From sequence record ON529851.1: DNA of 64,000 nucleotides; one strand, given 5' to 3'. Below the pieces are notes generated by a model that was not told the origin of the DNA, searched no databases, and worked only from the letters and a program-made list of their open reading frames with translations. This document shows positions 8,432 through 63,966 of this stretch, one piece after another. Position numbers and translations under genes: made by a program. Numbering within the stretch: the stretch's first letter is position 1; each line of letters starts with the position of its first letter.

Positions 8432-8506
8432 TGGAGCGACTGGTCGGAATCGAACCGACGTCCCCAGGTTGGAAGCCTGGTGCTAAGGCCCCTCAGCTAC
8501 AGTCGC
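8432..8506 (-). tRNA. tRNA-Gly(TCC)
   Basis: CCAGG-CTTCCAA-CCTGG, U73-CCA. Confidence 0.92.
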
Positions 8507-8520
8507 AGTATAAAACAAGG

Positions 8521-8596
8521 TGGAGCGACTCTCGGGACTCGAACCCGACCCTGCGCGTTGGCAACGCGTTGTACCCACCCATAATACGTGAGTCGC
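8521..8596 (-). tRNA. tRNA-Gly(GCC)
   Basis: Loop TT-GCC-AA, U73-CCA. Confidence 0.88.
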
Positions 8597-8608
8597 ATGG
8601 TTAATAAA

Positions 8609-8690
8609 TGGCACGGGTGGAGGGATTCGAACCCCCGACATATGCTGGTTTTGGAGACCAGTGCCTTGAGCCAGACTTGGCGACACCCGT
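8609..8690 (-). tRNA. tRNA-Trp(CCA)
   Basis: CTGGT-CTCCAAA-ACCAG, G73-CCA. Confidence 0.9.
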
Positions 8691-40736: not shown

Positions 40737-41156
40737 TCAAAGGGTCAGGCTCCGGATAGGTCCGCCGGAATGGATGTCCAGCTTGATGGCGGCGGCGACC
40801 GCTTCGACCGCCGAGGCGCCGGCCAGCATCGCCCCCATCGCCAGGTCGCCGCCGGAGCCGAACGCCACCACGCCGGTGGTGTTGACCCAGGGACCTTGCG
40901 AGCCCCAGACCACCATGGTGCCGTCCGGGGTGATGACGAAGCCGTTGGCGTTGTTGCTGCCCTCGACCGGGCACTTGCCGCGCATGCCGCCCCGGACCCA
41001 CTCGCAGAAACGATGACAGATCGCGGTGCAGCCGGCGCCGCCGATCAAAACCCGCCTATGACGCCAAATCTTCTGGGAGAACCCGTCCCGTTGTCCGCCG
41101 GACGTCACGAGAGAGTCGGCGGCGAGCACGCCGTCTTTGAATGCGATGGTCGTCAA
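40737..41156 (-). CDS. Ntn-hydrolase (HslV/proteasome-beta-like) protease
   Basis: MTTIAF...LAADS, K, GSG...A.GAM..GASA.EAV..A...D..SGG. Confidence 0.8.
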   Translation of the reverse strand: MTTIAFKDGVLAADSLVTSGGQRDGFSQKIWRHRRVLIGGAGCTAICHRFCEWVRGGMRGKCPVEGSNNANGFVITPDGTMVVWGSQGPWVNTTGVVAFGSGGDLAMGAMLAGASAVEAVAAAIKLDIHSGGPIRSLTL

Positions 41157-41171
41157 GAGGGGAAATCGATA

Positions 41172-41459
41172 CTAGGGGCGTGGCTTGATGTTGCGGAAGT
41201 CCGCAGGCAGGGGCCAGCAGGTGATCAGGATGTCGTCGACGAACACGTAGAGATGCCCGGCGTGGACCCTCATGTTGTTCGCGGTGCGCTCGCGCAGGTA
41301 GATTCCGTCCAGGTAGCGTCGGAACTTCCCGGAGAACTGACTGTGGGTCGCGCCCTTCTCCAGGGCGGCGGCGGCCTGCCGTTCAACGGCGCGGCGAGGT
41401 AGACCCAGGCGTTTCCGCACTCTCAGGTCCGCGTGGTCGGTCACTTGAACATCGGTCAT
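41172..41459 (-). CDS. Hypothetical protein (95 aa)
   Basis: Own promoter at about 41468-41493; TDHA..R..KR motif. Confidence 0.7.
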   Translation of the reverse strand: MTDVQVTDHADLRVRKRLGLPRRAVERQAAAALEKGATHSQFSGKFRRYLDGIYLRERTANNMRVHAGHLYVFVDDILITCWPLPADFRNIKPRP

Positions 41460-49993: not shown

Positions 49994-50195
49994 TTTCGTC
50001 AGTCCCTGTGCGGGGGGCCAATCCCTCCGTCCATGTGAAGAGAATACGGGGAAAGTCTTAACAAGAAGTTAACACGCACAACAAAACGCACGCCGCGCGA
50101 AGAAAAACGCACGCCGCCGGAAAGGCCGTTTTTAGCCCCATACAGGGCAGGGGAGGGCTCGCCGCTGTCAGGTGACAGGCGAGCCCCTGAAGCCC

Positions 50196-50441
50196 CTAGC
50201 TGGCCGCTCCCTCGGCCTCGCAACGCAGGTCGTCGGAGGCTTGCGCCGCGTTCAGGCAATCTTGCGCGCTCATGCCGTAGTCATCGACGTAGGCGTGAAC
50301 CTCGCCGCCCTCGACCACGTATTGAACGAGGGCGTAGGATTCGGCGGGGGGCGTCGGCAGGGTGAAGCCGTGGCCGTTAAAGGCGACAAGGCCAAGGGCG
50401 GCGACGGCGAAGAGGGCGGCGGGCAGGATCAGGCGGGGCAT
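50196..50441 (-). CDS. Secreted or membrane hypothetical protein (81 aa)
   Basis: Signal-like N terminus; SD AAGGA. Confidence 0.65.
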   Translation of the reverse strand: MPRLILPAALFAVAALGLVAFNGHGFTLPTPPAESYALVQYVVEGGEVHAYVDDYGMSAQDCLNAAQASDDLRCEAEGAAS

Positions 50442-50465
50442 GGGCGGGGTTCCTTTGGGCAGGGG

Positions 50466-50624
50466 TCAGGCGCGAAGGTCTAGGGCGGCGGCGTCCGCCT
50501 TCGCCAGCGCGTCGGCCTTGGCGTAGGCGACGGCGGCGAGGGTCAGCGTATCCAGCCGGGCGGCGATCTGGCGGCGGGCGGCGCGGCGCTGGCGGCGTTC
50601 TTGGGGGGTCAGGTCGCGGAGCAT
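50466..50624 (-). CDS. Hypothetical protein (52 aa)
   Basis: ORF in the cassette operon. Confidence 0.55.
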   Translation of the reverse strand: MLRDLTPQERRQRRAARRQIAARLDTLTLAAVAYAKADALAKADAAALDLRA

Positions 50625-50680
50625 GGGGGAAGCCTTGGCAGGAGGGCGGGGGAGGCGGGCTTGCGCCCGCCCCCTTGGGC

Positions 50681-50845
50681 TTAGGCCAGAAGGGCGGCGA
50701 TGCGGGCGGCGGCGCCTTGCGGGCGGGCTTGCTCGCCGGTCCACTCGGCGCGGACGTGCGCGGGGGCGGGGGCGGCGGCTTCCATGGCGGGCTTGCGCTG
50801 GCCGAAGGTGGCGGTGCGGGTCAGGGGCGAGGCGTTCTTGAACAT
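50681..50845 (-). CDS. Hypothetical protein (54 aa, MFKNASP...)
   Basis: SD GGAGA after the CtrA promoter at 50888. Confidence 0.65.
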   Translation of the reverse strand: MFKNASPLTRTATFGQRKPAMEAAAPAPAHVRAEWTGEQARPQGAAARIAALLA

Positions 50846-50971
50846 GGGTCGTTCTCCGTTGTTGAACCCACTATAGGGGCGCAGAACTTAACAGCAAGTT
50901 AAAATCGACAAGCCCCTGAATCTTTTTTGAGGGCAGGGCAGGGGAGGCTTTCGGCCTCCCCTTGGGGCGGG

Positions 50972-51109
50972 TCAGCCGCGCGCGCCGCGCAGCCAGCCGT
51001 CCGCCCATTGCGCGGCGTCCGCCGAGTCGAGGGGATGGGGGCAGACGTCGAAGGGCTGGCCCGATTCGTAAGCATCACGGCCAGCCTTGTAAGCGGAGGT
51101 CAGGGGCAT
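50972..51109 (-). CDS. Rmf/CrpP-like small protein (45 aa)
   Basis: AYKAGRDAY..G.....CP.......QW.DGW pattern. Confidence 0.5.
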   Translation of the reverse strand: MPLTSAYKAGRDAYESGQPFDVCPHPLDSADAAQWADGWLRGARG

Positions 51110-51375
51110 GAGAGGCGTTCCCGTCGGCGCTTTCTTGGGGCCAATCCCCTAGCGGCGACATAGGCAGATTAGCCGTCCAACCGTTAACAAGAAGTTAACG
51201 CCGAGAAAGTTTTTCCGGGCAGGATGGTTAACGGATTCGCCTCCGGCGTTAACCATAGGGCCAGGCGCGGCGCTGGCGCGAGGGCGGGTTAACCTTAACG
51301 GAATCGGGGGCCGCGTTAAGGTTAACGGCGGCGTATGGGCCTAGCCCCGCCCGGCGCGCCGGGCGGGGTCTGGCG

Positions 51376-51654
51376 TCAGGCGACCTGACGAATCAGCCGC
51401 CGTTCCCGGAACAGCCGATAGGTGAAGAAGGCCCGGCCCATTTCCGATTCGGTGTCGCCCGCGAAGTGGTCGGCGAACGCCAGCGGCATCGACGCATAGT
51501 CGGCGCCGTCGTCGCCCGTCCGGGCGATCAGCGAGCCTTCCGCGTCGCAGATGTAGAGGTCGAAGTCGCGACCGTCGTTCGGCGCGACCGCCGCGACCAA
51601 ACGGCAGGCGGCGCAGTCGTGAGCGAAGCGGGCGGTTTTGAAGAAAGAGGCCAT
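51376..51654 (-). CDS. Hypothetical protein (92 aa)
   Basis: SD GGGA; CtrA promoter at 51707. Confidence 0.7.
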   Translation of the reverse strand: MASFFKTARFAHDCAACRLVAAVAPNDGRDFDLYICDAEGSLIARTGDDGADYASMPLAFADHFAGDTESEMGRAFFTYRLFRERRLIRQVA

Positions 51655-51771
51655 GGCGTTTCCCTTGGGGTTGCCGTTGAATGTCACCCTTTATCCCACC
51701 CAACCCTTAACAAGAAGTTAACGGCGGAAAAGAAAATCGCCCGCCCGGCGAACCGGGCGGGCGGGGTCGTC

Positions 51772-52683
51772 TTAGGCGGCGAGGGCGACGTCTAGGGCCT
51801 CGCCAGCGGGCTCCGCCTCGCCCGCGTCGGCCTTGGCGTTTAGAATGAACTCGGCGGCGGCTTGGGCCTTCGAGCACGCCTGAATGAAGGCCTTGGGGTT
51901 GGAGCGGATGCGCTTGGCCCATGCGCCGATATAGGCGGCGTGGTCGTCGCGCTCGACGCTGGCGAAGCCTTGCGAGGCGCAGACAAACGCCGCCGTCAGT
52001 TCCGCGACCAATTCCTCAAAGGCGTAAGCGTCGTCGCCGAACTCGCGCCCAAAGACGCGATTCAGGCGGTGCGCCGCGCCGGTCCAATGGCCGATCTCAT
52101 GGAAGGCCGTGGAATAAAAACCGTCAACCGAAACGAAGTCGGCGAAGGCCGGAAGCTGGATGCGATCGACGCTCGGCGCGTAAAAGGCTTTCGTGCCGCC
52201 GTAACGGATTTCGGCCCCGGTGGCGGTCATGAGGGCGTCAGCGGCGGCGATGCGCTCCAGTTCCGGGCGCGCGGCGGCGGGCTCCGCTTGGGGCAGTTCG
52301 ATTCCGTCGCACTGGGCGATGTTGAACACGGTGTAAGCCTTGGCGAAGAAAGACGCCTTTTCCTCGCCCGTCGCCTTGTCTTTGCGATTCGTCCGCGACC
52401 AAAAGAACACTTGCGTTCCCTTCTCGCCCGCCCGGACGGAACCGCCCTTGGCCTTGGCTTGCTTGAACGTCAGCCAGACGGGTTCGGCATAGCCGCGCGC
52501 CTCCTGTTCCATCCAGAGCCAGAACACGTTCGCGCCGCGATAGGCGCGGCCTTCGATGTTGTGCGGCATGGCGATAGCGCCGGGGCGCGCGGTCCAAGGC
52601 TTGGCCCAAGGGCGCACGCCCGATTCCAGCTTGCCCGCGATGGTCGCGGCGATCTTGTCGAAAACGTCGTTTGCTTGGGCCAT
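51772..52683 (-). CDS. ArdC-like ssDNA-binding/antirestriction protein
   Basis: PW.KPW...Y.G.N...W.TFKQA...GG.V..GEKG...Y.VFNIAQ...Y.P..D.I.LP...F...FHE.GHWTG...RL.R...YA.EEL.AEL. Confidence 0.88.
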   Translation of the reverse strand: MAQANDVFDKIAATIAGKLESGVRPWAKPWTARPGAIAMPHNIEGRAYRGANVFWLWMEQEARGYAEPVWLTFKQAKAKGGSVRAGEKGTQVFFWSRTNRKDKATGEEKASFFAKAYTVFNIAQCDGIELPQAEPAAARPELERIAAADALMTATGAEIRYGGTKAFYAPSVDRIQLPAFADFVSVDGFYSTAFHEIGHWTGAAHRLNRVFGREFGDDAYAFEELVAELTAAFVCASQGFASVERDDHAAYIGAWAKRIRSNPKAFIQACSKAQAAAEFILNAKADAGEAEPAGEALDVALAA

Positions 52684-52970
52684 GTCAGGCGCTCCCGTTG
52701 AGGTGATAGGGCCAAACTACCGTCCAACCCTTAACAAGAAGTTAACGCCAGAAATCTTTTCCGGCAAGCCTTATTTTAACTTTTTGTTAAGACTTTCGCC
52801 CTATGGTGTATCTTGGGGAGGGATCGGCTGGGCCGTTAACCATGTTCGTTAGGGCGGCGTTAACCTTAACGGAAACGAAGGCCGCGTTAAGGTTAACGAA
52901 TCGGGCGGCGGCGTTAACCATGGGCCAGGCCCGCCGAAGGGCGGGCGGGGCCGCAGCCCCGCCGCGCCGG

Positions 52971-53333
52971 TCAGAACGGCTTGACGATTCGATAGGCGTC
53001 GTTCGCCCGCGCTTGGGCGCCGCCGTAGTCGCAAGCGAGGAAGTTTTCCGCCGCGCGGGCTTGCAGCATGAGCGACTCTTGCAGGGGCGTCGCCGGGGCG
53101 TTGTCCGGGCGCGCCTCGATCAGCTTGGCGATCACCACGCGAACCATGCCGGTCGCGTCGTTGCGGGTCAGTTGGCGCGTGTCGCGCATCCACTGAATCG
53201 CCTTTTCGTGAACGTCGTGAACCATGGTCAGGCACTCGCGATCAAAGGCCGATGCGCCGCGCGCGGCGGCGGTGATGTCGCCGAGGGTTTGCAGCATGAA
53301 GCCGATGGTCCGGGTTTTGCGTTCGTTCCGCAT
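52971..53333 (-). CDS. Hypothetical protein (120 aa)
   Basis: SD AAGGA. Confidence 0.7.
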   Translation of the reverse strand: MRNERKTRTIGFMLQTLGDITAAARGASAFDRECLTMVHDVHEKAIQWMRDTRQLTRNDATGMVRVVIAKLIEARPDNAPATPLQESLMLQARAAENFLACDYGGAQARANDAYRIVKPF

Positions 53334-53428
53334 CGCGGTGATTCCTTGGCAGGGGCGGCAACAGCGCCGCCCGACTGTTAGAACACGCGGAACGTTCCTT
53401 TACAAGAGCGTTCCGCGTCTTTTTGAGG

Positions 53429-53614
53429 TCAGCGGCGCGCCGGGCGCGACCAGCGGGGTTCGGTTCCGCGCGGCGGCATCGGGGCCGATTCGTCGTCGTC
53501 GTGGTCGCGCCACTTGCGCGAGCGGGAGGCTTCGCGGCTGGCGAATCGGTCCTGCTTGTCGAGCGTGTTGCGGGCGTCGTCGAGGGCGGCGTTACGGCGG
53601 AAGGTGCGGGCCAT
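53429..53614 (-). CDS. Hypothetical protein (61 aa)
   Basis: SD GGAG; CtrA promoter at 53682. Confidence 0.6.
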   Translation of the reverse strand: MARTFRRNAALDDARNTLDKQDRFASREASRSRKWRDHDDDESAPMPPRGTEPRWSRPARR

Positions 53615-53928
53615 GTCTGGACTCCAAGGGTTCGGGCGGCGGCCAGTCCGTCGCCCTGTTGACACCCTAGAGGCCAAGGTCTTAACAAAACGTTAAGAGC
53701 GGGGCCAGTCGAAAATCTTTCTGCTGTTAATCTTTTGTTAAGACTTTTGCCCTATGGTGTATCTTAGGGAGGGATCGGCTAGGCCGTTAACCATGTTCGT
53801 TAGGGCCGCGTTAACCTTAACAAAATCTTAAGCCCGTTAACCTGAATCGTTAAGGTTAACGGATTCGCCCGCCGCGTTAACCATGATTCCCCCGGCACAA
53901 AGAGAGGGGGCTGTCAAGCCCCCTCGCC

Positions 53929-54171
53929 TTAATCGTGGCGGAAGATCGTGCGGGGCTTCGCGGCCAGCCGCATCGCGTGGCGGCGCTCGATTCGCTTGCC
54001 CTGATAGAAATAGGTGCAGCGACCGAAACGGCCCTTCGGGCCGCGATGGATTCGCGTGACCAGTTCGCCGCCGTTCACTTGCGCGACCAGAACGGTCAGG
54101 CGGGCGGTGCGGGCCTCGACCAGCGAGGCGGTCAGGGCGTTGCGGGCGTTCAGGGCGCGGGCGGTTTGCAT
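53929..54171 (-). CDS. Hypothetical basic protein (80 aa)
   Basis: SD GGAG; CtrA promoter at 54228. Confidence 0.65.
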   Translation of the reverse strand: MQTARALNARNALTASLVEARTARLTVLVAQVNGGELVTRIHRGPKGRFGRCTYFYQGKRIERRHAMRLAAKPRTIFRHD

Positions 54172-54443
54172 CGGGCGTCTCCGTGAGGGCCAATCCCTCT
54201 TGACCTGACCAATATGGGGGCAAGAAGTTAACAAGAGGTTAACACCAGAAAAAAGTTTGGTGAAAACGACTCGCAAGTTTTCGGCCCTCGACGCCGGGCG
54301 CGGAGGGGTGCGGGCGGGCCGGGGCGGCGGGCCTCGACCGGGCGGGGCGGTCCAGCCCGCCGAGGGGCGCGGCGCGAGCCGGGGGTCAGGATCGACCGGG
54401 CGGCCAGCCCTGCCGGGCGCGGGCCGCGCGGGCGGCAGGGTCT

Positions 54444-54559
54444 CCCGTGGGCGGAAACGGCCCGACGTCAAGTTCGCCCGTGTAGGCGGAAACGGCCCGA
54501 CGTCAAGTTCGCCCGTGTAGGCGGAAACGGCCCGACGTCAAGGTCGCCCGTGGGCGGAA
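54444..54559. repeat. 35-bp tandem repeat, about 3.3 copies
   Basis: Unit GCGGAAACGGCCCGACGTCAAGTTCGCCCGTGTAG. Confidence 0.9.
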
Positions 54560-54643
54560 GTGAAGCCGCGTCAAGTCAAATCCGCGAGCGAAAGCGAAGC
54601 GGCGTCAGGTCAAGCCCGAAGGCGAAAGCGACGCCGCGTCAGG

Positions 54644-55123
54644 TCAGGCGGTCAGCGTCCGCCGATTGACCGAATCGGCGTAGGCCCAGGCGCGGTTACG
54701 CTCTTCGGCGCGGGCGTAAGCCTCGGCGGCTTCGGCGGCGCATTGCGCCTCGAACGCCTCGCGCGGAAAGGCCCGCTCGATGCGCTCGCGTTGGGTCTCA
54801 TGCCACGGGCGCGGGTCATGCTTCGGGGCGGGCGCCGGCGGCGCTTTGCCGTCCAAGGTGACGCGCGCGCCTTTAAGGCCGTGCGACCAGCAGCCGCCGG
54901 GGGTCAGGTTGTCCAGCAGGGTCTCCGCGCTCATGCCCTCGGGCGCGGTCAGGGCGAGGCCGGTGCGGCGGTTCAGGACGTGGGCCGGGAACAGGCCCGT
55001 CGCCGGGTCCGGCAGGATCAGGGCGTAGGCGGAGGCGTAGCCGTCGGAGTCGATTGCCCCGTCTTCCAGCAGATAGGCGTTGATGGCGGGGTTGGCCTTG
55101 AGGGCTTTGGCGAGGGTCAACAT
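54644..55123 (-). CDS. Hypothetical protein (159 aa)
   Basis: SD GGAG; CtrA promoter at 55169. Confidence 0.75.
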   Translation of the reverse strand: MLTLAKALKANPAINAYLLEDGAIDSDGYASAYALILPDPATGLFPAHVLNRRTGLALTAPEGMSAETLLDNLTPGGCWSHGLKGARVTLDGKAPPAPAPKHDPRPWHETQRERIERAFPREAFEAQCAAEAAEAYARAEERNRAWAYADSVNRRTLTA

Positions 55124-55260
55124 GACGGGCGTCTCCGGTTTCGATCCTGCTACCCTAGCGGACAGAAGTTAACAAGAGATTAACGCCGTGGTGATTTTTC
55201 AGGCGGGCGGGCGCCGGGCGGGCGTTAACCTTAACGGGCGTTAACGACGCCAGGCGCCGC

Positions 55261-55593
55261 CTAGTGCGCGTGGAAGTCCACGCGCCCGGCGGGCGAGACG
55301 TCGAAGTCCCAGACGTTGAAGCGGGCGGCCTCGGCGGCCTCCGCCGCTTCGGCCTCGCGGGCGGCGGCCCACGCCTCGCCCTCGGCCTTGTAGGCCGCTT
55401 CGGCCTCGGCCAGTTCCGCGCACTCGCGGGCGTAGGCCTCGGGGCAGCCGTAGCCCGTGGGGCGGTCGGGACGCGCGTCGAGCCACGCTTGCGCGGCGGC
55501 GACCGTGACGCCCGCCATACGGGGGCGGTAGCCGTAGTCGTTGCGGTGCAACTCATAATAGGTTTCGAGGATGGATTCGTCGCGGGTCAGCAT
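55261..55593 (-). CDS. Hypothetical protein (110 aa)
   Basis: SD GGAGAG; CtrA promoter at 55649. Confidence 0.75.
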   Translation of the reverse strand: MLTRDESILETYYELHRNDYGYRPRMAGVTVAAAQAWLDARPDRPTGYGCPEAYARECAELAEAEAAYKAEGEAWAAAREAEAAEAAEAARFNVWDFDVSPAGRVDFHAH

Positions 55594-55683
55594 GACAAGT
55601 CTCTCCGGCGGGACAGCCCCGCCACACCCTCACTATAGGGCAGAGGTGTTAACAGGAGGTTAACGGAACGGATAAATCGGTCA

Positions 55684-55790
55684 GGTCCCCGGTCGGAAAA
55701 TGGGGCAGGGTCCCCGGTCGGAAAATGGGGCAGGGTCCCCGGTCGGAAAATGGGGCAGGGTCCCCGGTCGGAAAATGGGGCAGGGTCCCC
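55684..55790. repeat. 25-bp perfect tandem repeat, 4.3 copies
   Basis: Unit GGTCCCCGGTCGGAAAATGGGGCAG. Confidence 0.95.
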
Positions 55791-55816
55791 GTTAACCTTA
55801 ACGGCCGGGCGCCGCG

Positions 55817-55936
55817 CTAGGCTCCGCGTCCCTTGCGGGAGTAGGAGCCTTTGCCCTTGCGGGCCTTGACCACGCGGACCCGGTAAGCCGGGGTGGCGAG
55901 GGCGGCGGCGGCGGGGTTGCGTTTCGGGGCGGCCAT
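55817..55936 (-). CDS. arfA: ArfA-like alternative ribosome-rescue factor (39 aa)
   Basis: NPAAAALATPAYRVRVVKARKGKGSYSRKG aligns with the ArfA core (N...ALL.DPLFRQRV.K.KKGKGSY.RK); SD GGAG; CtrA promoter at 55980. Confidence 0.75.
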   Translation of the reverse strand: MAAPKRNPAAAALATPAYRVRVVKARKGKGSYSRKGRGA

Positions 55937-55990
55937 GGGGTGTCTCCGTGGTTGATGGAAACACCCTAGCCGACAGAGGTTAACAAGAGG

Positions 55991-56437
55991 TTAAGCGGTC
56001 GGATATTTCGCCTGAAGCGCCGCCAGCTTGGCGCGGTCCTCCGCTTCGGCGGCGCGGCGGTCGGCGGCGGCCTTACGGGCGGCGGCGGCGCGCTTGGCGT
56101 CGCGGGCGGCGGTTTCCGGGGCCAGCCACGCCGGGTCCGCGCCGTCCGCGACGGGGGCCAGGTAAGCCAAGGGGAAGGACACCTCGACCCAATCCTGATA
56201 GCCGTAGCTTCCCGAAACGTAGAATTTGGCGTCCACGGTTTCAGGCTTTTCGCCACGCGCCTCGTCCAGTTCCCAGCTTTCGAGATAGCCATAGACGACG
56301 GTGTCGAGTCGTTGATCCTTGGGCTTCACAGGCTCATCCAGCCGGAAGATGTAAATCTCGCGGGCCAAGGGTTCCAGCGCCTCATTCAGGGCGTCGCGCT
56401 CGGCCACAAAGGCCTTCAGACGGTCAGGGGTCAGCAT
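55991..56437 (-). CDS. Hypothetical protein (148 aa)
   Basis: SD GGAG. Confidence 0.72.
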   Translation of the reverse strand: MLTPDRLKAFVAERDALNEALEPLAREIYIFRLDEPVKPKDQRLDTVVYGYLESWELDEARGEKPETVDAKFYVSGSYGYQDWVEVSFPLAYLAPVADGADPAWLAPETAARDAKRAAAARKAAADRRAAEAEDRAKLAALQAKYPTA

Positions 56438-56451
56438 GGCGGTTCTCCGGT

Positions 56452-56925
56452 TCAGGCCGCAGGCGTTTCGGTCAGGGCGGCGCGTAGGGCGTGGGTGACA
56501 GGGCGGAGCGACAGGGGGTAGGTTTTCGAGGCGTCCCAGTGGCGCTGCATCAGGGCTTCGGCCTCGGTCAACGTCTCGGCGGTCCCGCTCTTCAGCTTGA
56601 CCCAGCCGGGGGCGATAGACGACACGTCTTCCAGCACGACATAGGGCGCGGGCAGACGCACAACCTCAAAGCGCAGGGCCGGGTTTTCGGCCACGCCGAA
56701 CGATTTGTCGATCTTGAAATGGGACTCATCGTCCGTGCGGAGGCTGAAGCGGGCCTGATAGGAATCGGCGTCTTTCTTTTCGACGAAAAGGCCCAGCCCG
56801 TTGTGCCGCTTCCACTCGGCCAGCTTCTTGTTGAAGCGGGCGGGCGGCTTGGCGGTCCCGTCCGTGAAACGGATCGTCGCCCCGAAGGGGGCCAGCGCGT
56901 GCAGTTCGGTGGCGGTCAGAAACAT
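56452..56925 (-). CDS. Hypothetical protein (157 aa)
   Basis: SD GGGAGAG; CtrA promoter at 56969. Confidence 0.72.
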   Translation of the reverse strand: MFLTATELHALAPFGATIRFTDGTAKPPARFNKKLAEWKRHNGLGLFVEKKDADSYQARFSLRTDDESHFKIDKSFGVAENPALRFEVVRLPAPYVVLEDVSSIAPGWVKLKSGTAETLTEAEALMQRHWDASKTYPLSLRPVTHALRAALTETPAA

Positions 56926-57063
56926 GGGGCTCTCCCGTAGATGATGCGTCGGTTCTAGCACCGATTCGTTAACAGGAGGTTAACGCGCCGGGCGGGGCGG
57001 CGGGCGTTAACCTTAACGGCAGGCGATCAGGATCAGGCCCGCCGGGGAGGGCGGGCCGTCGCC

Positions 57064-57576
57064 TTAGACGGTGATGGCGTCGCGGGCCTTGGTCAGTTCC
57101 TCGATCAGCACATCGAGGCGGCGCACGGCCTCGGCGCCGCTATCGCAGTCTTCCTTGGCGTCCAGTTCCACCATGACGGCGGTAAAGATGGTGTCGCCCG
57201 CGTCCGTCGCATCGGCCAGGGTCGCCATCCAAGCATAATCCGCCTCGCCGTAGGCGTCGGCGAACTCGCGTTGCCACGGCGACAGGGGCGTGTCTGGCAG
57301 GGTCACGCCCAGCGTGTGCGGCATCAGGGCGGCGGCGACTTTCAACACTTGGAAGTCGCCCGCCATGCCGTCGTCACAGGCGGCTTGCAGTTCCTTGGCG
57401 ATCTGGCCCGCAAGAGCGGCGCCGGTCACTTGGTCACTGGCACGGCCCAGCACGGCCGCGTCGTCGCCGAGGTCGCGGGTCAGCAGCACGATGGCTTGAT
57501 ATTGATGGTCGGGATGGGCGCGGCAGGTTTCCACCACGTCGGCGCGGGGCAGGATGAAAGGGGTCAGGTCGGTCAT
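57064..57576 (-). CDS. Hypothetical protein (170 aa)
   Basis: SD GGGAGAG; CtrA promoter at 57620. Confidence 0.72.
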   Translation of the reverse strand: MTDLTPFILPRADVVETCRAHPDHQYQAIVLLTRDLGDDAAVLGRASDQVTGAALAGQIAKELQAACDDGMAGDFQVLKVAAALMPHTLGVTLPDTPLSPWQREFADAYGEADYAWMATLADATDAGDTIFTAVMVELDAKEDCDSGAEAVRRLDVLIEELTKARDAITV

Positions 57577-57690
57577 GGGGCTCTCCCGTCGATGATGCGT
57601 CGGTTCTAGCACCGATTCGTTAACAAGAGGTTAACGCGCCGGGCGGGGCTGGCGGGCGTTAACCTTAACGGAAGGTGAAGGGTCGGCGCG

Positions 57691-58020
57691 TCAGGGGAGG
57701 CGCGCCGGGTTCAGGGCCAGACTGACGCGGCGGGCCTTGGACGGCTTGCCGGTCAGGATTCGCTTGTCGGTCTTGGCCCCGCAGCAGGTGCAGACGGCGC
57801 GGCCTAGATCGAACCGGACCGAAGCCAGGGGGTCGCAGGTGCCGTTCACGGTCAGCTTGAGCGCGGCGTCTGACAGCTTGGGGTGATGGCCCAGCCTGTC
57901 CCGGCGCCGCTCGGCGTGGGCGCTCATGCCCGCCGCGTTGCGGTTGCCCCGGCGCACCACAGTCCCGGCGACCTTGTAGAGGCCGCCGGAAAAGGTGTTG
58001 TCGGTAACGTAGCGGCGCAT
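57691..58020 (-). CDS. Hypothetical protein (109 aa)
   Basis: TGATG coupling. Confidence 0.65.
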   Translation of the reverse strand: MRRYVTDNTFSGGLYKVAGTVVRRGNRNAAGMSAHAERRRDRLGHHPKLSDAALKLTVNGTCDPLASVRFDLGRAVCTCCGAKTDKRILTGKPSKARRVSLALNPARLP

Positions 58021-58193
58021 CAGGCGTTCACGTTGTAGTGACCGACTTTGTTGCCGTTGAGGTCGCGGACGGACCCTTCGTCGGCGCCGTTCTCGATCTT
58101 TTGGGCGAGGTCACGCAGGATGCGGGCGATTTCGTAAGGCTTGTCGCCCTCGTCAAAGGCGGCGTTGCCGGTGTCGATTTCCAGTTTGAACAT
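58020..58193 (-). CDS. Hypothetical protein (57 aa, MFKLEIDTGNAAF...)
   Basis: SD GGAG; CtrA promoter at 58236. Confidence 0.7.
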   Translation of the reverse strand: MFKLEIDTGNAAFDEGDKPYEIARILRDLAQKIENGADEGSVRDLNGNKVGHYNVNA

Positions 58194-58348
58194 GGTCTGT
58201 CTCCGTTTCGATCCTTAGACCATAGCCGACAGAAGTTAACAAGAGGTTAAGGACTTCGCGGCCTGTTGCGAGGGGTTGGCGTTAACCTTAACGGGGCGGG
58301 GCAAAAGAGGGACGGCGGCCATCCCGGCGCCGTCCAGTTGCAGGCGGA

Positions 58349-58642
58349 TCAGGCCGCGAAGGGCCGATTACGGGTGCGGCGCTCGCCGTAGTCGGTGACG
58401 GCCTCGCGCAGGTCCGAGAAATAATGACCCGACGAATAGCCAGGGCGGGGCTGATTGCGGTAGTCGACTCGCATATGGGTCACGTAGCGATTCGCGTCGT
58501 GATGGTCGGGGCCGAAGTCACGCAGGACGATGGCGCCGGGTTCGGTGGCGGAGTCGCCGCGCAGCTTGAACTCCGCGAGGGTGACGGGGAACTTCGTCGC
58601 CGCTTCAGAGCGGGCCTTGATCTTGTTGAACAGGTCGGACAT
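58349..58642 (-). CDS. Hypothetical protein (97 aa)
   Basis: SD GGAGAG. Confidence 0.7.
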   Translation of the reverse strand: MSDLFNKIKARSEAATKFPVTLAEFKLRGDSATEPGAIVLRDFGPDHHDANRYVTHMRVDYRNQPRPGYSSGHYFSDLREAVTDYGERRTRNRPFAA

Positions 58643-58826
58643 CGGTTTCTCTCCTTCGATGCCCCCAACATCGCACAAAGGTCTTAACGAAACGTTACCA
58701 CGGCGGGGCCAGGGTGGTGAAGGCGCGTTAGGGTTAACAGGGCGGGGCAAAAGAGGGGACGGCGGCCATCCCGGCGCCGTCCAGTTTGCCGCGATCAGCG
58801 TTCGCGGCGACGCGTTCGGTTGCCGC

Positions 58827-59126
58827 CTAGAGGGCGGTCAGGGCGTGCCACAGGGCGTTAGGGACTACGGCGCCCGCCGCGACCGGCGCGAAGGCGGTTT
58901 CCCCGCCCTCGGGGCCGTAGTGGGGCATGACGCAGCCGGGCAGGGCGTCGATCATGCGGATGCGGTAGAGCGGCACGTCCGCGAAAGGGGGGTTCTCGAC
59001 CCGGCCCAGCACCTCGGCGCGACCTTCGCCGCCGTTGAGGTAGCCGGGCGCATAGGTCACGATCTGGCCCGGCGCAAAGGTGGTGTTTTCCGGGGTGCGG
59101 GCGGGGGCGAGGGCGATGCGGGTCAT
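58827..59126 (-). CDS. Hypothetical protein (99 aa)
   Basis: SD GGAG. Confidence 0.7.
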   Translation of the reverse strand: MTRIALAPARTPENTTFAPGQIVTYAPGYLNGGEGRAEVLGRVENPPFADVPLYRIRMIDALPGCVMPHYGPEGGETAFAPVAAGAVVPNALWHALTAL

Positions 59127-59127
59127 G

Positions 59128-59307
59128 TCAGGCTCCAGCGGACAGAAGAACGGCGGTCGAAAGGTGTTGCGTCGCCTGCTTGCGCAGGGCGGCGGTCAGG
59201 AGGCGGGCCGCTTCCTTGGCGTTCCCGGCCAGCGCCGCCGCTTCGGCGCGCTTGGCGAAAAAGGCCTTGGACTTGCGGGCGCGCCGGGCGCGTTGGTGAT
59301 CGGTCAT
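59128..59307 (-). CDS. Hypothetical basic protein (59 aa)
   Basis: SD GGGAG; CtrA promoter at 59352. Confidence 0.6.
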   Translation of the reverse strand: MTDHQRARRARKSKAFFAKRAEAAALAGNAKEAARLLTAALRKQATQHLSTAVLLSAGA

Positions 59308-59431
59308 CGGGCTTGCTCCCTTGTGATGCCCCTAGTCCTACAGGATAGAAGTTAACAAGAGATTAACGCCGAGACGATCGGTCGGCGGGGCGCCGGGCCT
59401 TAACCTTAACGCCGGGCGGCGGTGGGGCGGC

Positions 59432-59644
59432 CTAGCGGCCAGCCCCTTGGGTCTTTTGCGCCATGCGCCGCGCGCGCCCGGCGGTCCAGCCCCGGCGGTA
59501 GGCGTCGCCGATCTGGCGGCGGTCTTCGCCCACGGCCCATGACATCCGGTTGTCGCGGCGCCCATATTCCAACCCGCCCTCGGCGTCGATGACGCCGCCG
59601 TGATATTGCGCCATCAGGGCGCGTTCCGTGACCGGGAGCCCCAT
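59432..59644 (-). CDS. Hypothetical protein (70 aa)
   Basis: TGATG coupling; AYRRGW.AG motif. Confidence 0.6.
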   Translation of the reverse strand: MGLPVTERALMAQYHGGVIDAEGGLEYGRRDNRMSWAVGEDRRQIGDAYRRGWTAGRARRMAQKTQGAGR

Positions 59645-59868
59645 CAGTGAACCCCGCCCAGCCGGGCGGCGCGCTGGCCGTCGTTTTCCATGTAGAAGTG
59701 ACCGTCGATGCGGTAGATGCGTTTCCCGGCGTCGTAGGGGCGCAAGCCCCCGAACGCGACTTGGAAGGTGGCGGGCGTGTCGCCCACGTAGAGGGTCGCC
59801 CCGTCCGGCTTGACGCAGACGGCGACGCCCTCGCGGACCTGAACGGTTCCGATCAGTCGGCGGGCCAT
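59644..59868 (-). CDS. Hypothetical protein (74 aa)
   Basis: TGATG coupling. Confidence 0.65.
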   Translation of the reverse strand: MARRLIGTVQVREGVAVCVKPDGATLYVGDTPATFQVAFGGLRPYDAGKRIYRIDGHFYMENDGQRAARLGGVH

Positions 59869-60167
59869 CAGGCGGCGGCCTTCTTGGCGGCGGGCTTGTA
59901 ACCCTCGACTCGACCGTCCAGCAGGGCGGCGCCGTCCAGCGGTCCCTCGAACGACTGCACGTCGTCCAGCGCCGCCATCGTCACGGCGCGGAAGGCCTTT
60001 TTGCGGACGTTGGAATTGACGGCCCCGTCCGTGGCGCGGCTAACGGCGCGGTAACAGGCTTCGGGGTGGGATTGCGCCTGAACCGTCCTCTTATAGACGC
60101 CCAGGTCATCGCCCAGCCAGAACATGACGACGAAATCTTGGCGGGCGGGTCGGATCGGGTGATGCAT
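59868..60167 (-). CDS. Hypothetical protein (99 aa)
   Basis: SD AAGGG; CtrA promoter at 60219. Confidence 0.68.
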   Translation of the reverse strand: MHHPIRPARQDFVVMFWLGDDLGVYKRTVQAQSHPEACYRAVSRATDGAVNSNVRKKAFRAVTMAALDDVQSFEGPLDGAALLDGRVEGYKPAAKKAAA

Positions 60168-60319
60168 CGCGGGTGGTCCCTTGCGGTGGTTTGTTCCCTT
60201 ATACATAGACGACAGAAGTTAACAAGAGGTTAAGACGCCGACGTTTTCGCGGGGCGGCGGCGGGGTGTTAACCTTAACGACAGGTTAACGGGTCAGCGGC
60301 CCCGAAGGGCCGCCTTGCG

Positions 60320-60739
60320 TCAGGCCGCGACCGGCTGGCGCAGCAGGGACCACAGCCGGTCCATCGCCTTGTTGACGACGTGAGGCGACCCGACGCCGAA
60401 CGGCGTGACGTTGACCACGTCGGCGGACTTCCAGACATAGGCCCGGATCGTGCCGACGCGCGGGCCGTGCGGCGGCTGTTCGGTGGTGACGAACAGGGTC
60501 ACGCCCAGATGGTCGAAGTCGTAGAAGCCGCCGGGGAACTTCGTGCCGAAACCCTTCATGGCGTTCTTGTCGAACCAATGACCGCGACGGCGGCGGGCGT
60601 AATCGCGCTCGATGTTGGCGAGGCAGTTGCTCGAACCCTCGAAGGCCGGGCCTTCGTGCGGGGCGGGCGCGGCGTCCGCCAGAAGGCCCGGCAGGGCGGC
60701 GGCGGCGGCGAGGGCGATGCGTTCGGCTTGGGTGGTCAT
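60320..60739 (-). CDS. Hypothetical protein (139 aa)
   Basis: SD GGAG; CtrA promoter at 60781. Confidence 0.72.
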   Translation of the reverse strand: MTTQAERIALAAAAALPGLLADAAPAPHEGPAFEGSSNCLANIERDYARRRRGHWFDKNAMKGFGTKFPGGFYDFDHLGVTLFVTTEQPPHGPRVGTIRAYVWKSADVVNVTPFGVGSPHVVNKAMDRLWSLLRQPVAA

Positions 60740-60799
60740 GGGCGTCTCCGGTTTGATAGGGCCAACCTACAGGGAGGAAGTTAACAAAGCGTTAACGGG

Positions 60800-61129
60800 C
60801 TAGTCAATGACCTTCAGGCCGGACTCGATTTGGGCGCGGTAATGGGCGGCGTTCGCCTTGGCCTCTTTGTATCCGGGGCTGTCCGCCGGGAAGCGCGCCG
60901 CCTGACGCTCATAGGTCGCGGCGGCGTCGGTCGCCATGGCCTCGATGCGGGCGCGGGCGCGGCGCCTGGCCTCGGCTTCGTTGGGCGCGGCGTCGGAATC
61001 ATAGCCGCCTTGCGACCACACAGAGGCCGATTGCCCTTCGCGCCAGTCGCCCCGGCCATGGGATTGCACGTAGCCGTGAATGACGTGACCGCCTTGGCGA
61101 TTGTCGGCTTTCAGGGATGCGACGAACAT
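60800..61129 (-). CDS. Hypothetical protein (109 aa)
   Basis: SD GGAGAG; CtrA promoter at 61172. Confidence 0.7.
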   Translation of the reverse strand: MFVASLKADNRQGGHVIHGYVQSHGRGDWREGQSASVWSQGGYDSDAAPNEAEARRRARARIEAMATDAAATYERQAARFPADSPGYKEAKANAAHYRAQIESGLKVID

Positions 61130-61287
61130 GGGACTCTCCGTGGGTTGAGGCTTCACACTAGAGGCTAGTTCTTAACAAACCGTTAAAGACTGTCAAGCGG
61201 TTTCGCAGGGCTTAACCTTAATGCCGCGTTAAGGTTAACGGCGGGCGGGCGGGCGTCGCCCCGGCGCGAGGCCGGGGCGATCCTGGG

Positions 61288-61608
61288 TCAGCCGATCAGG
61301 CGCGTCTTGAGCGTCGCCCGGCCTTCCGGCGTCAGCTTGGCGCGTTGGGCGCGGAGGAAGGTCAGGCCTGCCGCAAAGCTGTCGATGCGGCCCGCGTATT
61401 GGCGCTCCAACCACTTCAACGGTTCCGGGTAATGCGAGGCGTAGAAGGCCACGCGGCCCGGCTTGATGCGGGGGAACAGCTTGGCGCGGGCCTCTTTGAT
61501 CGAGGTCGCGCCGGGCACGGGGAGTTCCGCGACCACACGCCCCTTGCGGAGGATGTGGGCCGTGTTCAGTTCCGGCGCGTAGGCGTGGCGTTCGAGGATC
61601 AGTTTCAT
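61288..61608 (-). CDS. Hypothetical protein (106 aa)
   Basis: SD GGAG; CtrA promoter at 61651. Confidence 0.72.
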   Translation of the reverse strand: MKLILERHAYAPELNTAHILRKGRVVAELPVPGATSIKEARAKLFPRIKPGRVAFYASHYPEPLKWLERQYAGRIDSFAAGLTFLRAQRAKLTPEGRATLKTRLIG

Positions 61609-61661
61609 CGGTCGACTCCGTTTCGATCCTTAGACCATAGGCGACAGAAGTTAACAAGAGG

Positions 61662-62303
61662 TTAAGAGGTGAAGTTTTCCAGATAGCGGCGGCGCATGGC
61701 CGCGACCGTCGTCGGCGTGACCCGGACAATGTCAGCGTTTTTGCGCATCATCTCTTCACGCATGAATGACGTCGTCGCCAATTGCAGGGTGTGATTCACG
61801 CAGGAATGATAGCCGTCTTTCAGGCGCGCAATCGGCCACGTCGGCGGGTGCAACGTGACGTGTTCCAAGGCCTCCAGCGGGATCGGCAAGGGGAGGTCGT
61901 CGCGATGCTGATTGGCCTCGGTCTGCTCATAGGTCGCGCCGCGCGGGTAGACCCCCAAGATCAAATCGCCGTTGTTCAGCCGGAACCACGTCAGGCCGGA
62001 TCGCCCGTCGTCGCCGACCGCTTGCGCCAGCACGTAGCGGGCCACGGCGGCGTCCGCCGGGACGGCCCACGCCACAACCATATCCAGCGTGTTACCGTCG
62101 GCGTCGTGGGCGAAGATCGGGGAAACAGGGCCAGGTTCTTCCACGACGTCGGACGGGTCGAGGCCGAAGGGTCCGTCGAGCCAGACGGCGCGGGCCATGG
62201 TCAGGCCGTCGCTGTAGGCGTCGCGTTCGGCCAGCGTCGCAAAAGGGCCGTGAAGGATATTCGCCGGGCAACGCAGATAGTGTCCAACCGCTGAATCGGT
62301 CAT
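61662..62303 (-). CDS. Hypothetical protein (213 aa)
   Basis: SD GGGAGG; CtrA promoter at 62346. Confidence 0.75.
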   Translation of the reverse strand: MTDSAVGHYLRCPANILHGPFATLAERDAYSDGLTMARAVWLDGPFGLDPSDVVEEPGPVSPIFAHDADGNTLDMVVAWAVPADAAVARYVLAQAVGDDGRSGLTWFRLNNGDLILGVYPRGATYEQTEANQHRDDLPLPIPLEALEHVTLHPPTWPIARLKDGYHSCVNHTLQLATTSFMREEMMRKNADIVRVTPTTVAAMRRRYLENFTS

Positions 62304-62411
62304 TGGGGCCTCCCTTGAATGAGCCTCATGCCTAGCACCGATTCGTTAACAAGAGGTTAACGCCGTGCGGCGGTCGGGCGTTAACCTTAACGGGCGTTAG
62401 GAAAGCCAGGG

Positions 62412-62822
62412 TCACAGGCCCCGGCACGTTGGGCCGAACCCGGACTCGATCGACGCGGGGTCGGTCAGGGGCAGGGCGCAGCGCCCGCAGCGGCCCTCAT
62501 GATAGACCTTGAGCGCGGGCGGGATGCGCCCGGCGGCGAGGTGGGGCCACGCCCACGCGAAGGCGCGCGCGGACGGGGCGTCGGCGCCGATGCTGGCGCG
62601 GCGGCCATGCCGGAACGAATCATCGGCGAAGATCGTGCCGAGGAAGGTGTAGTCGGCTTCGTTGTCCGCGCCCGTCAGGACCGACACGAACCAGACGCTG
62701 TCCTTGGCGCCCACGCGATAGGTGAAGCGGGCGCCGGTGGTCTCGCTGACCAGCGTGACGCGGGCGCGCCCGGCGAGCATGAAACGGCGGACGGTTTCGG
62801 CGGACATTTCAGCGGCGGACAT
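62412..62822 (-). CDS. Conserved phage hypothetical protein with C-terminal Zn motif (136 aa)
   Basis: F.LAG.A.VTL.S..TG..FTYRV...GRCGRC..PLTDP.SI..GFGP.C. Confidence 0.75.
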   Translation of the reverse strand: MSAAEMSAETVRRFMLAGRARVTLVSETTGARFTYRVGAKDSVWFVSVLTGADNEADYTFLGTIFADDSFRHGRRASIGADAPSARAFAWAWPHLAAGRIPPALKVYHEGRCGRCALPLTDPASIESGFGPTCRGL

Positions 62823-62964
62823 GGGGTCGGCTCCGGGCGGGTGATCCTGTCACCCTAGAGCCGATTCGTTAACAAAAGGTTAAGCCCGCGCCGTCGCCGG
62901 GACGCGTTAAGGTTAACCGGCGGCAGGCGGGAAAACGCCGCCCGGCGAACCGGGCGGCGCGGGA

Positions 62965-63474
62965 TCAGGGGGCCAGAGGATCGGGGGCGGGGATGATCTC
63001 GACTTGACGCCGGCCCTGCTTGACGCGCCCGACCTTGATTCGCTTCTCGACGGCGGCGCGCGCCCATTCGTTGCGCGTGGTCTCGGCGGCGTGGCGGCCC
63101 GTCTCATCAACGGCGCTGTAGATGGAATACAGCAGGCCGAACAACGCGACCTCCGGCATGGCCTTGACCGCCTCCAGCATTTCGCCGTTATCGTAGGCGC
63201 CTGACACTTCCACGACGCGCGTCCCCGCGCCGTGCTGCATCAGAATGTAGAAGGTCGATTTGCGGTCGCGGCGGCGCTCGCTTTCGCCGGTGCGGCGGAC
63301 GGCCAGCTTGACGTCATAGGCGCGGTAACAGACGCCCGTGCCGGGCTTGCCGTTGTCGCTTCCCAGGATTCGCATTTCGCGTTCCGGCAGGGGATGGCGC
63401 AGGACCTCGAAGGGCTCGAAAGTCGTGTCGTCGGCGTAGCCCGACCCACGGGCGATGATGGCGCTTTTCAGCAT
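62965..63474 (-). CDS. Hypothetical protein (169 aa)
   Basis: SD GGAG; CtrA promoter at 63518. Confidence 0.72.
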   Translation of the reverse strand: MLKSAIIARGSGYADDTTFEPFEVLRHPLPEREMRILGSDNGKPGTGVCYRAYDVKLAVRRTGESERRRDRKSTFYILMQHGAGTRVVEVSGAYDNGEMLEAVKAMPEVALFGLLYSIYSAVDETGRHAAETTRNEWARAAVEKRIKVGRVKQGRRQVEIIPAPDPLAP

Positions 63475-63528
63475 GAGGGGTCTCCGGTTGCGAGCCTGTA
63501 TCTCTACAGGCCCGGCGTTAACAGGGGC

Positions 63529-63966
63529 TTAATACGTGATGTCGTTCGTGCGGTCCCGCAGGGCCTCGGCGTAGGTGTCGAAGGGCGCCGATTCGGCCTC
63601 TTCTTCGGCGTCATACCAATGGAACTTCTCGACCGGGGCGGCGTCTTCCGTCGCGCCGGGGTAGGTGCGCAGGAAGACTTCCAAGTCTTCCAGATCGGCG
63701 TCGTCCGGGTCCATTTGCAGGGCGAGGGCCTTGGGCTGGGCCGGGACCGCGCCGCCCGAATAGACGTCCACGCACACGCCCATGAAGGTCGCGATTTCGG
63801 TCGCCTGCTTCAGGAACAGCCGCTGATTGTCGCGGGGCAGGGCTTGGGCCACGGCCACCGTATAGGCGTCGCTGGCGAGGCTCCAGACCAGTTCGGTGAA
63901 GGTCTCGACGCCGTCGTCCATATCGGCGTAACCGACGACGGTGTAAAAGGCGGGGGATTCGGCCAT
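63529..63966 (-). CDS. Hypothetical acidic protein (145 aa)
   Basis: SD AGGAG. Confidence 0.72.
   Translation of the reverse strand: MAESPAFYTVVGYADMDDGVETFTELVWSLASDAYTVAVAQALPRDNQRLFLKQATEIATFMGVCVDVYSGGAVPAQPKALALQMDPDDADLEDLEVFLRTYPGATEDAAPVEKFHWYDAEEEAESAPFDTYAEALRDRTNDITY

Follow-up and report, generated by a model that had tools for sequence, protein, structure and literature searches.

The window analysed here is a stretch of 64,000 nucleotides, corresponding to bases 1-64000 of the genome of Brevundimonas phage vB_BpoS-Marchewka (ON529851.1, 348,421 bp), a member of the subfamily Dolichocephalovirinae with B. pondensis LVF1 as its host. An arfA-like gene of 120 bases lies on the minus strand within a long series of small genes that are each preceded by a CtrA-type box. 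The features of the locus, in the direction of transcription of this gene and after the array as a whole, are as follows.

50058..63532, minus strand: CtrA-box promoter cassettes, the window's share of an array of ~38 kb (26 boxes, with the arfA-like gene among them)
55980..55994, minus strand: canonical CtrA-type box, TTAA-N7-TTAA, 43 nt 5' of the arfA-like ATG (motif search; invariant in five phages)
55963..55970, minus strand: -10-like element GCTAGGGT of the arfA-like promoter cassette (position, and invariance in five related phages)
55944..55947, minus strand: Shine-Dalgarno sequence GGAG, 7 nt 5' of the arfA-like ATG (read from the sequence; layout repeated across the CtrA-box cassettes of the region)
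55934-55936, minus strand: arfA-like start codon, ATG (read directly)
55817..55936, minus strand: arfA-like coding sequence, 39 aa plus TAG stop (ORF and translation, Pfam PF03889, alignment with E. coli ArfA, synonymous-only variation)
55820..55849, minus strand: RNA hairpin spanning codons 30-39, up to the final sense codon (folding)
55817-55819, minus strand: arfA-like stop codon, TAG (read directly)
55669..55791, minus strand: 25-bp tandem repeat, 4.9 copies, between the arfA-like stop and the next promoter (TRF score 216)

A blastn comparison of the gene with ON529851.1 returned 100% identity at the same coordinates, and the GenBank coding sequence MARCHEWKA_01070 (product "hypothetical protein" in the Marchewka record) has the coordinates of the ORF in the window. 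The initial annotation of this DNA gave the position and the 39-aa peptide exactly and left the strand unstated; the plus-strand translation of 55817-55936 is meaningless. The normal stop codon, Shine-Dalgarno sequence and CtrA box that it described are all present (TAG, GGAG and TTAA-N7-TTAA). The box overlaps the stop codon of the preceding gene (55991-56437), while the designation of GCTAGGGT as a putative -10 element follows solely from its position. The 25-bp repeat is kept in five phages with 3-5 copies, and its core forms another array at genome positions 69119-69215.

An ORF of 39 codons is in itself no evidence of a gene, since in this DNA of 66% G+C a 6-kb stretch already contains 70 ORFs of 25 aa or longer. 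Comparison of related phages provides stronger grounds. A blastn search with the arfA-like gene found only five sister phages and a weak match in Erythrobacter phage L02. At the DNA level the Kabachok copy shows 100% identity, while those in Bambus, Domovoi and Papperlapapp show 95.6-97.5% and encode the same 37 residues; in Domovoi and Papperlapapp the protein ends at R37, where an insertion of ~240 bp replaces the last two codons. Over codons 1-37, the five phages differ at six nucleotide positions, and all six differences are synonymous (0 non-synonymous), demonstrating that the ORF is under purifying selection. The layout of promoter, Shine-Dalgarno sequence and ATG is likewise invariant in the five phages, and the spacer downstream varies. 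Beyond these phages, a search of 1.84 billion representative proteins yielded 50 relatives at E<=1e-3, and a larger protein collection contains more than 5,597 clusters of relatives, all with PF03889. The Pfam E-value, the synonymous-only variation, the repeated promoter-SD-ATG cassette and the GenBank coding sequence call confirm that the ORF is a real gene.

The distribution of the boxes is highly uneven. All 26 copies of TTAA-N7-TTAA in the window fall at 50058-63532, with none at 1-50000 and 0 expected, and the stricter motif TTAAC-N6-TTAAC has 26 matches versus 0 in shuffled sequences. Across the whole genome (348 kb), 70 of the 71 boxes are confined to 50-90 kb, where base composition predicts 0.25. 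Almost all boxes read on the minus strand have, at fixed spacing downstream, a CTAnnnT element, a GGAG and a small gene's ATG; a Pfam search of ten proteins neighbouring the arfA-like product gave no match. Electrophoretic mobility shift assays (EMSA) and reporters have demonstrated binding of CtrA to boxes of this type in PhiCbK-like and Brevundimonas phages, along with activation of PhiCbK promoters (PMC9437464). The predicted CtrA-box promoter of the arfA-like gene is thus supported at the motif level, and early expression of the gene can reasonably be inferred from the promoter's presumed dependence on host factors alone. The gene had initially been called constitutively active, a description that is doubtful for its transcription and not apt for a promoter with a box for a cell-cycle regulator, given that CtrA activity is cell-cycle dependent.

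The proposed ArfA-like identity was borne out by a Pfam search, in which the protein exceeds the gathering score of the ArfA family PF03889 (38.8 bits versus 25.5, E 6.3e-10), with protein residues 9-37 aligned to profile positions 14-42 of 44. ArfA is the sole Pfam family matching the protein at E<=10; an NCBIfam search gave no match, and no RF-1 domain of the GGQ-containing ArfB type was matched in Pfam. ArfT was rejected as an identity, being a separate family according to the literature, with ArfA the sole Pfam match. A single-sequence phmmer search of the PDB matched nothing but chains of E. coli ArfA taken from ribosome complexes (E 2.3e-5), and a profile built from the 50 short-form relatives matched these chains at E 1.4e-12. 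The alignment is ungapped and pairs phage residues 5-37 with ArfA 12-44 of E. coli, so that phage position n corresponds to ArfA position n+7. In this register, and with the roles of the E. coli residues taken from a review (PMC8012679), the following correspondences are obtained.

ArfA helix 15-24 (first 16S rRNA contacts): phage 8-17
ArfA A18 (A18T blocks RF2 activation): phage A11, within the alanine run A9-A12
ArfA F25 (hydrophobic RF2 contact): phage Y18
ArfA strand 27-30 (joins the RF2 sheet): phage V20-R21-V22-V23
ArfA 34-39 (basic, glycine-rich stretch of the core): phage 27-32, identical

A shift of the register by one would leave the equivalent of A18 an alanine, A9-A12 all being alanine. 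The position aligned with A18 varies among short-form members, so that it does not define the clade and the details of register or mechanism may be different. Amongst the 50 relatives, G28, Y32 and R34 are invariant, and K27, G30 and V23 are at least 90% conserved. The peptide as a whole contains 11 lysines and arginines and no aspartate or glutamate (pI 12). ArfA is disordered when off the ribosome.

Both ends of the protein are shorter than in E. coli ArfA. The helix is preceded by just seven residues (M1-N7), with no counterpart of ArfA 1-7, as is also the case in the cellular short forms; in E. coli, 14 N-terminal residues become ordered with open RF2 (PMC8012679). [quoted passage not shown] Judged by profile match and alignment, the 39-aa protein is a member of the ArfA family, and its homology to E. 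coli ArfA suggests that it would carry out RF2-dependent rescue.

The absence of the regulatory tail, which the initial annotation presented as a feature of the phage version, has two aspects, namely what the gene lacks and where else the same form occurs. The E. coli arfA gene is an ORF of 72 codons with an internal hairpin that leads to a stop-less mRNA; the active form is 17-18 residues shorter at its C-terminus, only 46-48 residues are ordered in ribosome structures, and the sole role of the tail is in regulation (PMC8012679). The phage ORF stops 7 residues past the core tyrosine, compared with 33 in E. coli and 14-42 at gammaproteobacterial loci. No terminator-like site was found and there is no U-tract, and the surrounding region of 326 nt folds no better than its shuffled versions (z -0.91). 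The hairpin over codons 30-39 has a predicted energy of -21.5 kcal/mol, but its z-score falls from -1.95 in Marchewka to -0.97 in Bambus and +0.91 in Domovoi, where the structure is destroyed. Its helix consists of just 11 pairs with an internal loop, and its 3' arm is replaced by the insertion in two phages (Domovoi and Papperlapapp). This hairpin is probably not regulatory, and the idea of an RNase III-type regulatory site at the 3' hairpin was discarded as unsupported, the z-score being weak and the structure not conserved. With no terminator, a regional fold at z -0.91 and a hairpin that is not conserved, nothing points to production from a stop-less mRNA, and the description of the gene as having no regulatory tail holds.

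What does not hold is any restriction of this form to phages. Tails were compared at 80 genome loci (the best 80 of 219 matches) and 80 IMG/VR loci; IMG/VR holds at least 242 short-form members. In chromosomal copies from Gammaproteobacteria (Rheinheimera, Aliivibrio, Bowmanella and others) the tail spans 14-42 residues and includes a hydrophobic stretch, whereas alphaproteobacterial copies share the short N-terminus of the phage protein and stop 4-12 residues past the core, and most viral copies at the 80 IMG/VR loci stop 7-19 residues past it. The median tail length is 16 at the viral loci versus 19.5 at the genome loci. Taillessness as a phage-specific trait was therefore rejected, because the split follows the clade (long in Gammaproteobacteria, short in Alphaproteobacteria and phages) and because short forms are chromosomal in SAR11. 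The latter follows from the synteny of all 12 of 12 Pelagibacteraceae loci, in which the short arfA lies amid housekeeping neighbours, between a response-regulator-like gene and the genes for a PfkB kinase, endonuclease III and DapB. The closest cellular relatives among the matches listed are from Denitrobaculum (72%) and an Acetobacteraceae metagenome-assembled genome (65%); the Denitrobaculum copies have long tails, unlike the phage protein. No Caulobacterales copy was present among the best 80 of the 219 genome matches. According to a review, ArfA is confined to the Beta- and Gammaproteobacteria (PMC8874680), and an nhmmer survey of 15,259 genomes found it in 0 of 2,376 Alphaproteobacteria, with C. 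crescentus said to lack it. The SAR11 chromosomal short forms contradict both the restriction to Beta- and Gammaproteobacteria and the alphaproteobacterial count of 0/2,376. Short, stop-terminated ArfA is a large clade present in phages and some bacteria rather than a phage invention.

The rescue provided by the phage version had also been described as independent of tmRNA. This stands for the arfA gene, which its lack of a tail and hairpin control would uncouple from tmRNA, but not for the phage, which encodes a permuted tmRNA of its own. The Rfam model RF04321 has a full-length match at 275693-275950 (57.2 bits versus a gathering score of 47, E 3.7e-8), falling between tRNA-Met and tRNA-Cys where nothing is annotated, and the frame that ends at the model's terminal UAA reads AHNDNFAAGERVLLAA. 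ARAGORN did not detect the Marchewka tmRNA, and the genome paper for the B. pondensis phages reports that no tmRNA was detected and makes no mention of ribosome rescue. The stretch is 94-100% conserved, and unannotated, in all 7 of 7 giant B. pondensis phages, and its acceptor part matches the annotated tmRNA of Brevundimonas phage Bajun as well as loci of PhiCbK-like phages that carry no annotation. Other related phages with reported tmRNAs are Sphingobium phage Lacusarx and Caulobacter phage Shash.

Several further translation and RNA-repair functions are encoded by Marchewka, including a Pth2-type peptidyl-tRNA hydrolase (PF01981), RtcB, an RNA ligase, a CCA-adding enzyme, a tRNA-His guanylyltransferase (Thg1-like), SerRS and 24 tRNAs, as well as a GcrA-like regulator. 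The 142-aa "peptidyl-tRNA hydrolase" was considered as a candidate ArfB and rejected, as it is the Pth2 (PF01981). No release factor is annotated in the Marchewka genome. The combination suggests that the phage ArfA is one piece of a translation-maintenance kit, acting beside the phage tmRNA rather than replacing one.

The reading favored here, to which a probability of about 0.62 is assigned, is that the gene encodes a short-form ArfA, driven by a CtrA box and uncoupled from tmRNA, which rescues ribosomes via the host RF2 as part of this kit. Host RNA polymerase would transcribe arfA from the CtrA-box promoter with no phage protein required, so that expression could begin as soon as the phage DNA is inside a CtrA-active cell. 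An mRNA with an ordinary Shine-Dalgarno sequence and an in-frame TAG would release its peptide normally and never become a tmRNA substrate, and because of this stop codon the peptide would never be tagged. Enterobacterial ArfA differs in being translated from a stop-less mRNA and eliminated through tmRNA tagging. The C-terminal half of the basic 4-kDa peptide would then enter the empty mRNA entry channel of ribosomes at the 3' ends of broken mRNAs, the central strand and the aromatic residue (18-23) would dock host RF2, and RF2 would hydrolyse the peptidyl-tRNA with neither a stop codon nor a degradation tag. Acting alongside the permuted tmRNA, Pth2, the 24 tRNAs and the RNA-repair enzymes, ArfA may help to keep ribosomes free while mRNAs and tRNAs are being cut, either through phage-induced decay of host mRNA or by RNA-cleaving defences of the host. 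In a pelagiphage, HTVC027P, the ArfA (gp30) is transcribed early, at 3 h post-infection (hpi), and again late, at 12-15 hpi. Compatibility with the Brevundimonas RF2 is an assumption of this reading, since ArfA/RF2 pairs are reported to be species-specific (PMC8012679) and the order to which the host belongs is said to lack ArfA.

The alternative that survives best, though it is unlikely, is that the peptide acts as a decoy or blocker, filling the empty mRNA channel of stalled or vacant ribosomes without activating RF2 and thereby excluding the host tmRNA-SmpB or ArfB. Such a blocker could benefit the phage by preventing the tagging of phage proteins or by giving an advantage to the phage tmRNA. 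The N-terminus is shorter than that of E. coli ArfA, whose residues 1-14 order alongside RF2 in its open state; there is no conservation of the KH motif; a tmRNA is encoded by the phage itself; and binding and activation are known to be separable, since the A18T variant of E. coli ArfA recruits RF2 without activating it (PMC8012679). However, the elements predicted to contact RF2 (the aromatic residue 18, the strand 20-23 and Ala 11) are kept under purifying selection, and the chromosomal copies of SAR11 have an equally short N-terminus in cells where a rescue blocker would make little sense.

It is less likely still that the peptide is of ArfA lineage but has been repurposed as a basic ribosome- or RNA-binding factor, serving to shut off host translation via the mRNA channel or working with RF1 or another partner. 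Its extreme charge (pI 12) would suit this role, in other systems translation can be inhibited by basic binders of the mRNA channel (PMC8874680), and the host lineage is reported to be without ArfA. Against this, the similarity extends beyond composition, with ArfA as the sole Pfam family and conserved positions along the whole core.

Rescue by a short-form ArfA made from an ordinary mRNA must also be weighed against retention of the canonical type of control, whereby the hairpin over codons 30-39 would cause cleavage or pausing, leave part of the mRNA stop-less and place expression under the control of the phage or host tmRNA. In Marchewka, Bambus and Kabachok a stable hairpin does extend precisely to the final sense codon, but the lack of a significant z-score in Bambus, the destruction of the structure in Domovoi and Papperlapapp, the 11-pair helix with its internal loop and no U-tract, the whole-region z of -0.91, and the fact that a cut within the hairpin would delete part of the conserved core together make this explanation very unlikely. 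That the gene is a spurious or decaying ORF without function, as its very short length and its "hypothetical" label in the Marchewka record might suggest, is hardly credible in view of a Pfam E-value of 6e-10, 0 non-synonymous versus 6 synonymous differences, a conserved promoter and Shine-Dalgarno sequence, and thousands of relatives.

A broader hypothesis builds on the favored reading of tmRNA-uncoupled rescue via RF2 and should be regarded as tentative, being possible but on balance improbable in its full form. It proposes that the giant phages of Caulobacterales import a self-sufficient kit for rescue and RNA repair, with an ArfA tuned to the host RF2 and switched on by CtrA at infection, as a counter-defence against RNA-cutting host systems, and that short ArfAs free of tmRNA control are widespread in Alphaproteobacteria and their phages and have been overlooked, at odds with the usual picture of ArfA as a beta- and gammaproteobacterial backup silenced by tmRNA. 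The members of the kit under this hypothesis are the short ArfA, the two-piece tmRNA, Pth2, RtcB, the RNA ligase, the CCA-adding enzyme and the 24 tRNAs. Short arfA genes are easily missed because they fall below the usual ORF cutoffs.

The identity of the gene is already a matter of public annotation and, as such, is a sound but fairly ordinary finding. In the sister phages (Kabachok, Bambus, Papperlapapp and Domovoi) the product is annotated as "alternative ribosome-rescue factor" or "putative ribosome-rescue factor", the JGI and NCBI pipelines already name many short forms ArfA, and g10 of Citromicrobium phage RXM and gp30 of pelagiphage HTVC027P have been named ArfA from the same Pfam domain, PF03889. 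No paper was found on the missing tail, the CtrA-box promoter or the co-occurrence with a phage tmRNA for ArfA, and a literature search found no experiments on the activity of any short-form ArfA. If the protein is active, the phage would supply tag-free rescue, unthrottled by tmRNA, in an order said to lack ArfA, and the gene would provide the first assignable function behind the CtrA-box promoters of PhiCbK-like phages, where no gene behind a CtrA box could previously be given a function (PMC9437464). Reviews and the 15,259-genome survey depict ArfA as limited to Beta- and Gammaproteobacteria and always produced from stop-less mRNA, whereas the genes of the short-form clade have ordinary stops.

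Amongst known systems, one of the closest is E. coli ArfA itself (YhdL; PF03889; 5H5U, 5MGP, 5MDV, 5U4I, 7OJ0), with which the phage protein is homologous over ArfA 12-44, the entire stretch in contact with the decoding centre, RF2 and the mRNA channel. Both proteins have a strongly basic C-terminal half, and the equivalents of A18 and F25 are retained in the phage (A11 and Y18). The two differ in that E. coli ArfA has 72 aa (~55 when active) and the phage protein 39 aa, without ArfA 1-7, the KH motif or the hydrophobic tail, and in that the E. coli gene carries an RNase III hairpin and internal terminator whereas the phage gene has neither, possessing instead a normal stop and a CtrA box, so that repression by tmRNA is not expected. 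The short ArfAs of SAR11 (Pelagibacteraceae) and other Alphaproteobacteria have the same architecture as the phage protein (31-45 aa, with a short N-terminus), although the SAR11 genes are cellular and the phage copy is viral. RXM g10 and HTVC027P gp30 are, like that of Marchewka, ArfAs of alphaproteobacterial phages, and the papers describing them are silent on the missing tail, the promoter and a co-resident tmRNA. The tmRNAs of Lacusarx, Shash and Bajun are rescue elements from the same broad lineage of phages, and Marchewka carries one too; however, tmRNA and ArfA are different molecules in different pathways, the former tagging the released peptide for degradation and the latter releasing it untagged. 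Lastly, the same dense, skewed intergenic clusters of boxes before small genes occur in PhiCbK-like and other pilus- or flagellum-dependent alphaproteobacterial phages (PMC9437464); Marchewka shares the subfamily Dolichocephalovirinae with the PhiCbK-like phages, and one of the genes behind its boxes belongs to the ArfA family.

A stretch lying between tRNA-Met and tRNA-Cys in the Brevundimonas phage vB_BpoS-Marchewka genome (ON529851.1), which carries no annotation there, matches the Rfam model of a permuted tmRNA across its whole length (57.2 bits versus a gathering score of 47). Its tag frame reads AHNDNFAAGERVLLAA. This tmRNA was not found by ARAGORN at 275693-275950, and the genome paper on these phages reports that no tmRNA was detected. 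Each of the seven giant phages of B. pondensis carries this stretch, 94-100% conserved and without annotation. Elsewhere, the genome encodes an annotated peptidyl-tRNA hydrolase that is a Pth2-type enzyme (PF01981, E 1.5e-8), the type that is usual in archaea and eukaryotes. Together with the phage's RtcB, RNA ligase, CCA-adding enzyme, Thg1-like guanylyltransferase, and SerRS, Pth2 forms an RNA-repair and translation kit. The tRNA cluster of the window comprises Ser (three), Ala, His, Leu (three), Pro (two), Asp, Glu, Gly (two), and Trp genes; because none of these 15 tRNAs carries a suppressor anticodon, TAG is read as stop.

ON529851.1 275693-275950 (L175, another stretch of this genome, 11693-11950; outside the window), minus strand: permuted (two-piece) tmRNA, RF04321
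ON529851.1 154933-155361 (L172, likewise, 40933-41361), minus strand: MARCHEWKA_03040, peptidyl-tRNA hydrolase
Window 4696-8690, minus strand: 15 tRNA genes in one cluster

arfA belongs to an array of promoter cassettes in which a CtrA box leads into CTAnnnT, then GGAG, and then the ATG of a small gene on the minus strand. Of the TTAA-N7-TTAA boxes in the entire Marchewka genome, 70 of 71 fall within 50-90 kb, and the array is adjoined by the terminase genes at 88.6-92.3 kb. Tandem repeats of three unit lengths occupy spacers from the stop of a small gene to the next promoter. The 25-bp unit downstream of arfA varies from three to five copies depending on the sister phage, and the core of this unit is found again in a second array, at genome positions 69119-69215; a search of this repeat for a hairpin or terminator gave nothing convincing. 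Relative to Marchewka, Bambus, and Kabachok, an insertion in Domovoi and Papperlapapp replaces the last two arfA codons and the stop, leaving R37 as the final residue of the protein, before a TGA stop codon.

Window 50058-63532, continuing to ~90 kb of the genome, small genes on the minus strand: ~70 CtrA-box (TTAA-N7-TTAA) promoter cassettes
Window 55669-55791, 54450-54559, and 54554-54646: tandem repeats with units of 25, 35, and 34 bp, respectively
L005:~640-880 (Domovoi) and L002:~3300-3540 (Papperlapapp): ~240-bp insertion at the arfA 3' end

An unannotated ORF of Erythrobacter phage vB_EliS-L02, in a stretch without any annotated gene, carries the ArfA core and is probably an arfA missed in annotation. 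In seven IMG/VR loci (L109, L110, L112, L125, L128, L142, and L158), ArfA-like ORFs run 70-116 residues past the core into a conserved second basic region, and may represent fusions with another domain. A published survey places arfA in no alphaproteobacterium. In SAR11, short arfA is a conserved, syntenic chromosomal gene (12 Pelagibacteraceae loci), flanked by genes for L,D-transpeptidase, a response-regulator-like protein, PfkB kinase, endonuclease III, and DapB.

L010:2448-2618 (OL955261.1 ~144.06-144.23 kb), plus strand: 56-aa ORF with ArfA core, vB_EliS-L02
Near position 3000 of each of the 12 Pelagibacteraceae loci (within L019-L090, bacterial genome loci): short arfA, 31-41 aa, ending in an ordinary in-frame stop codon
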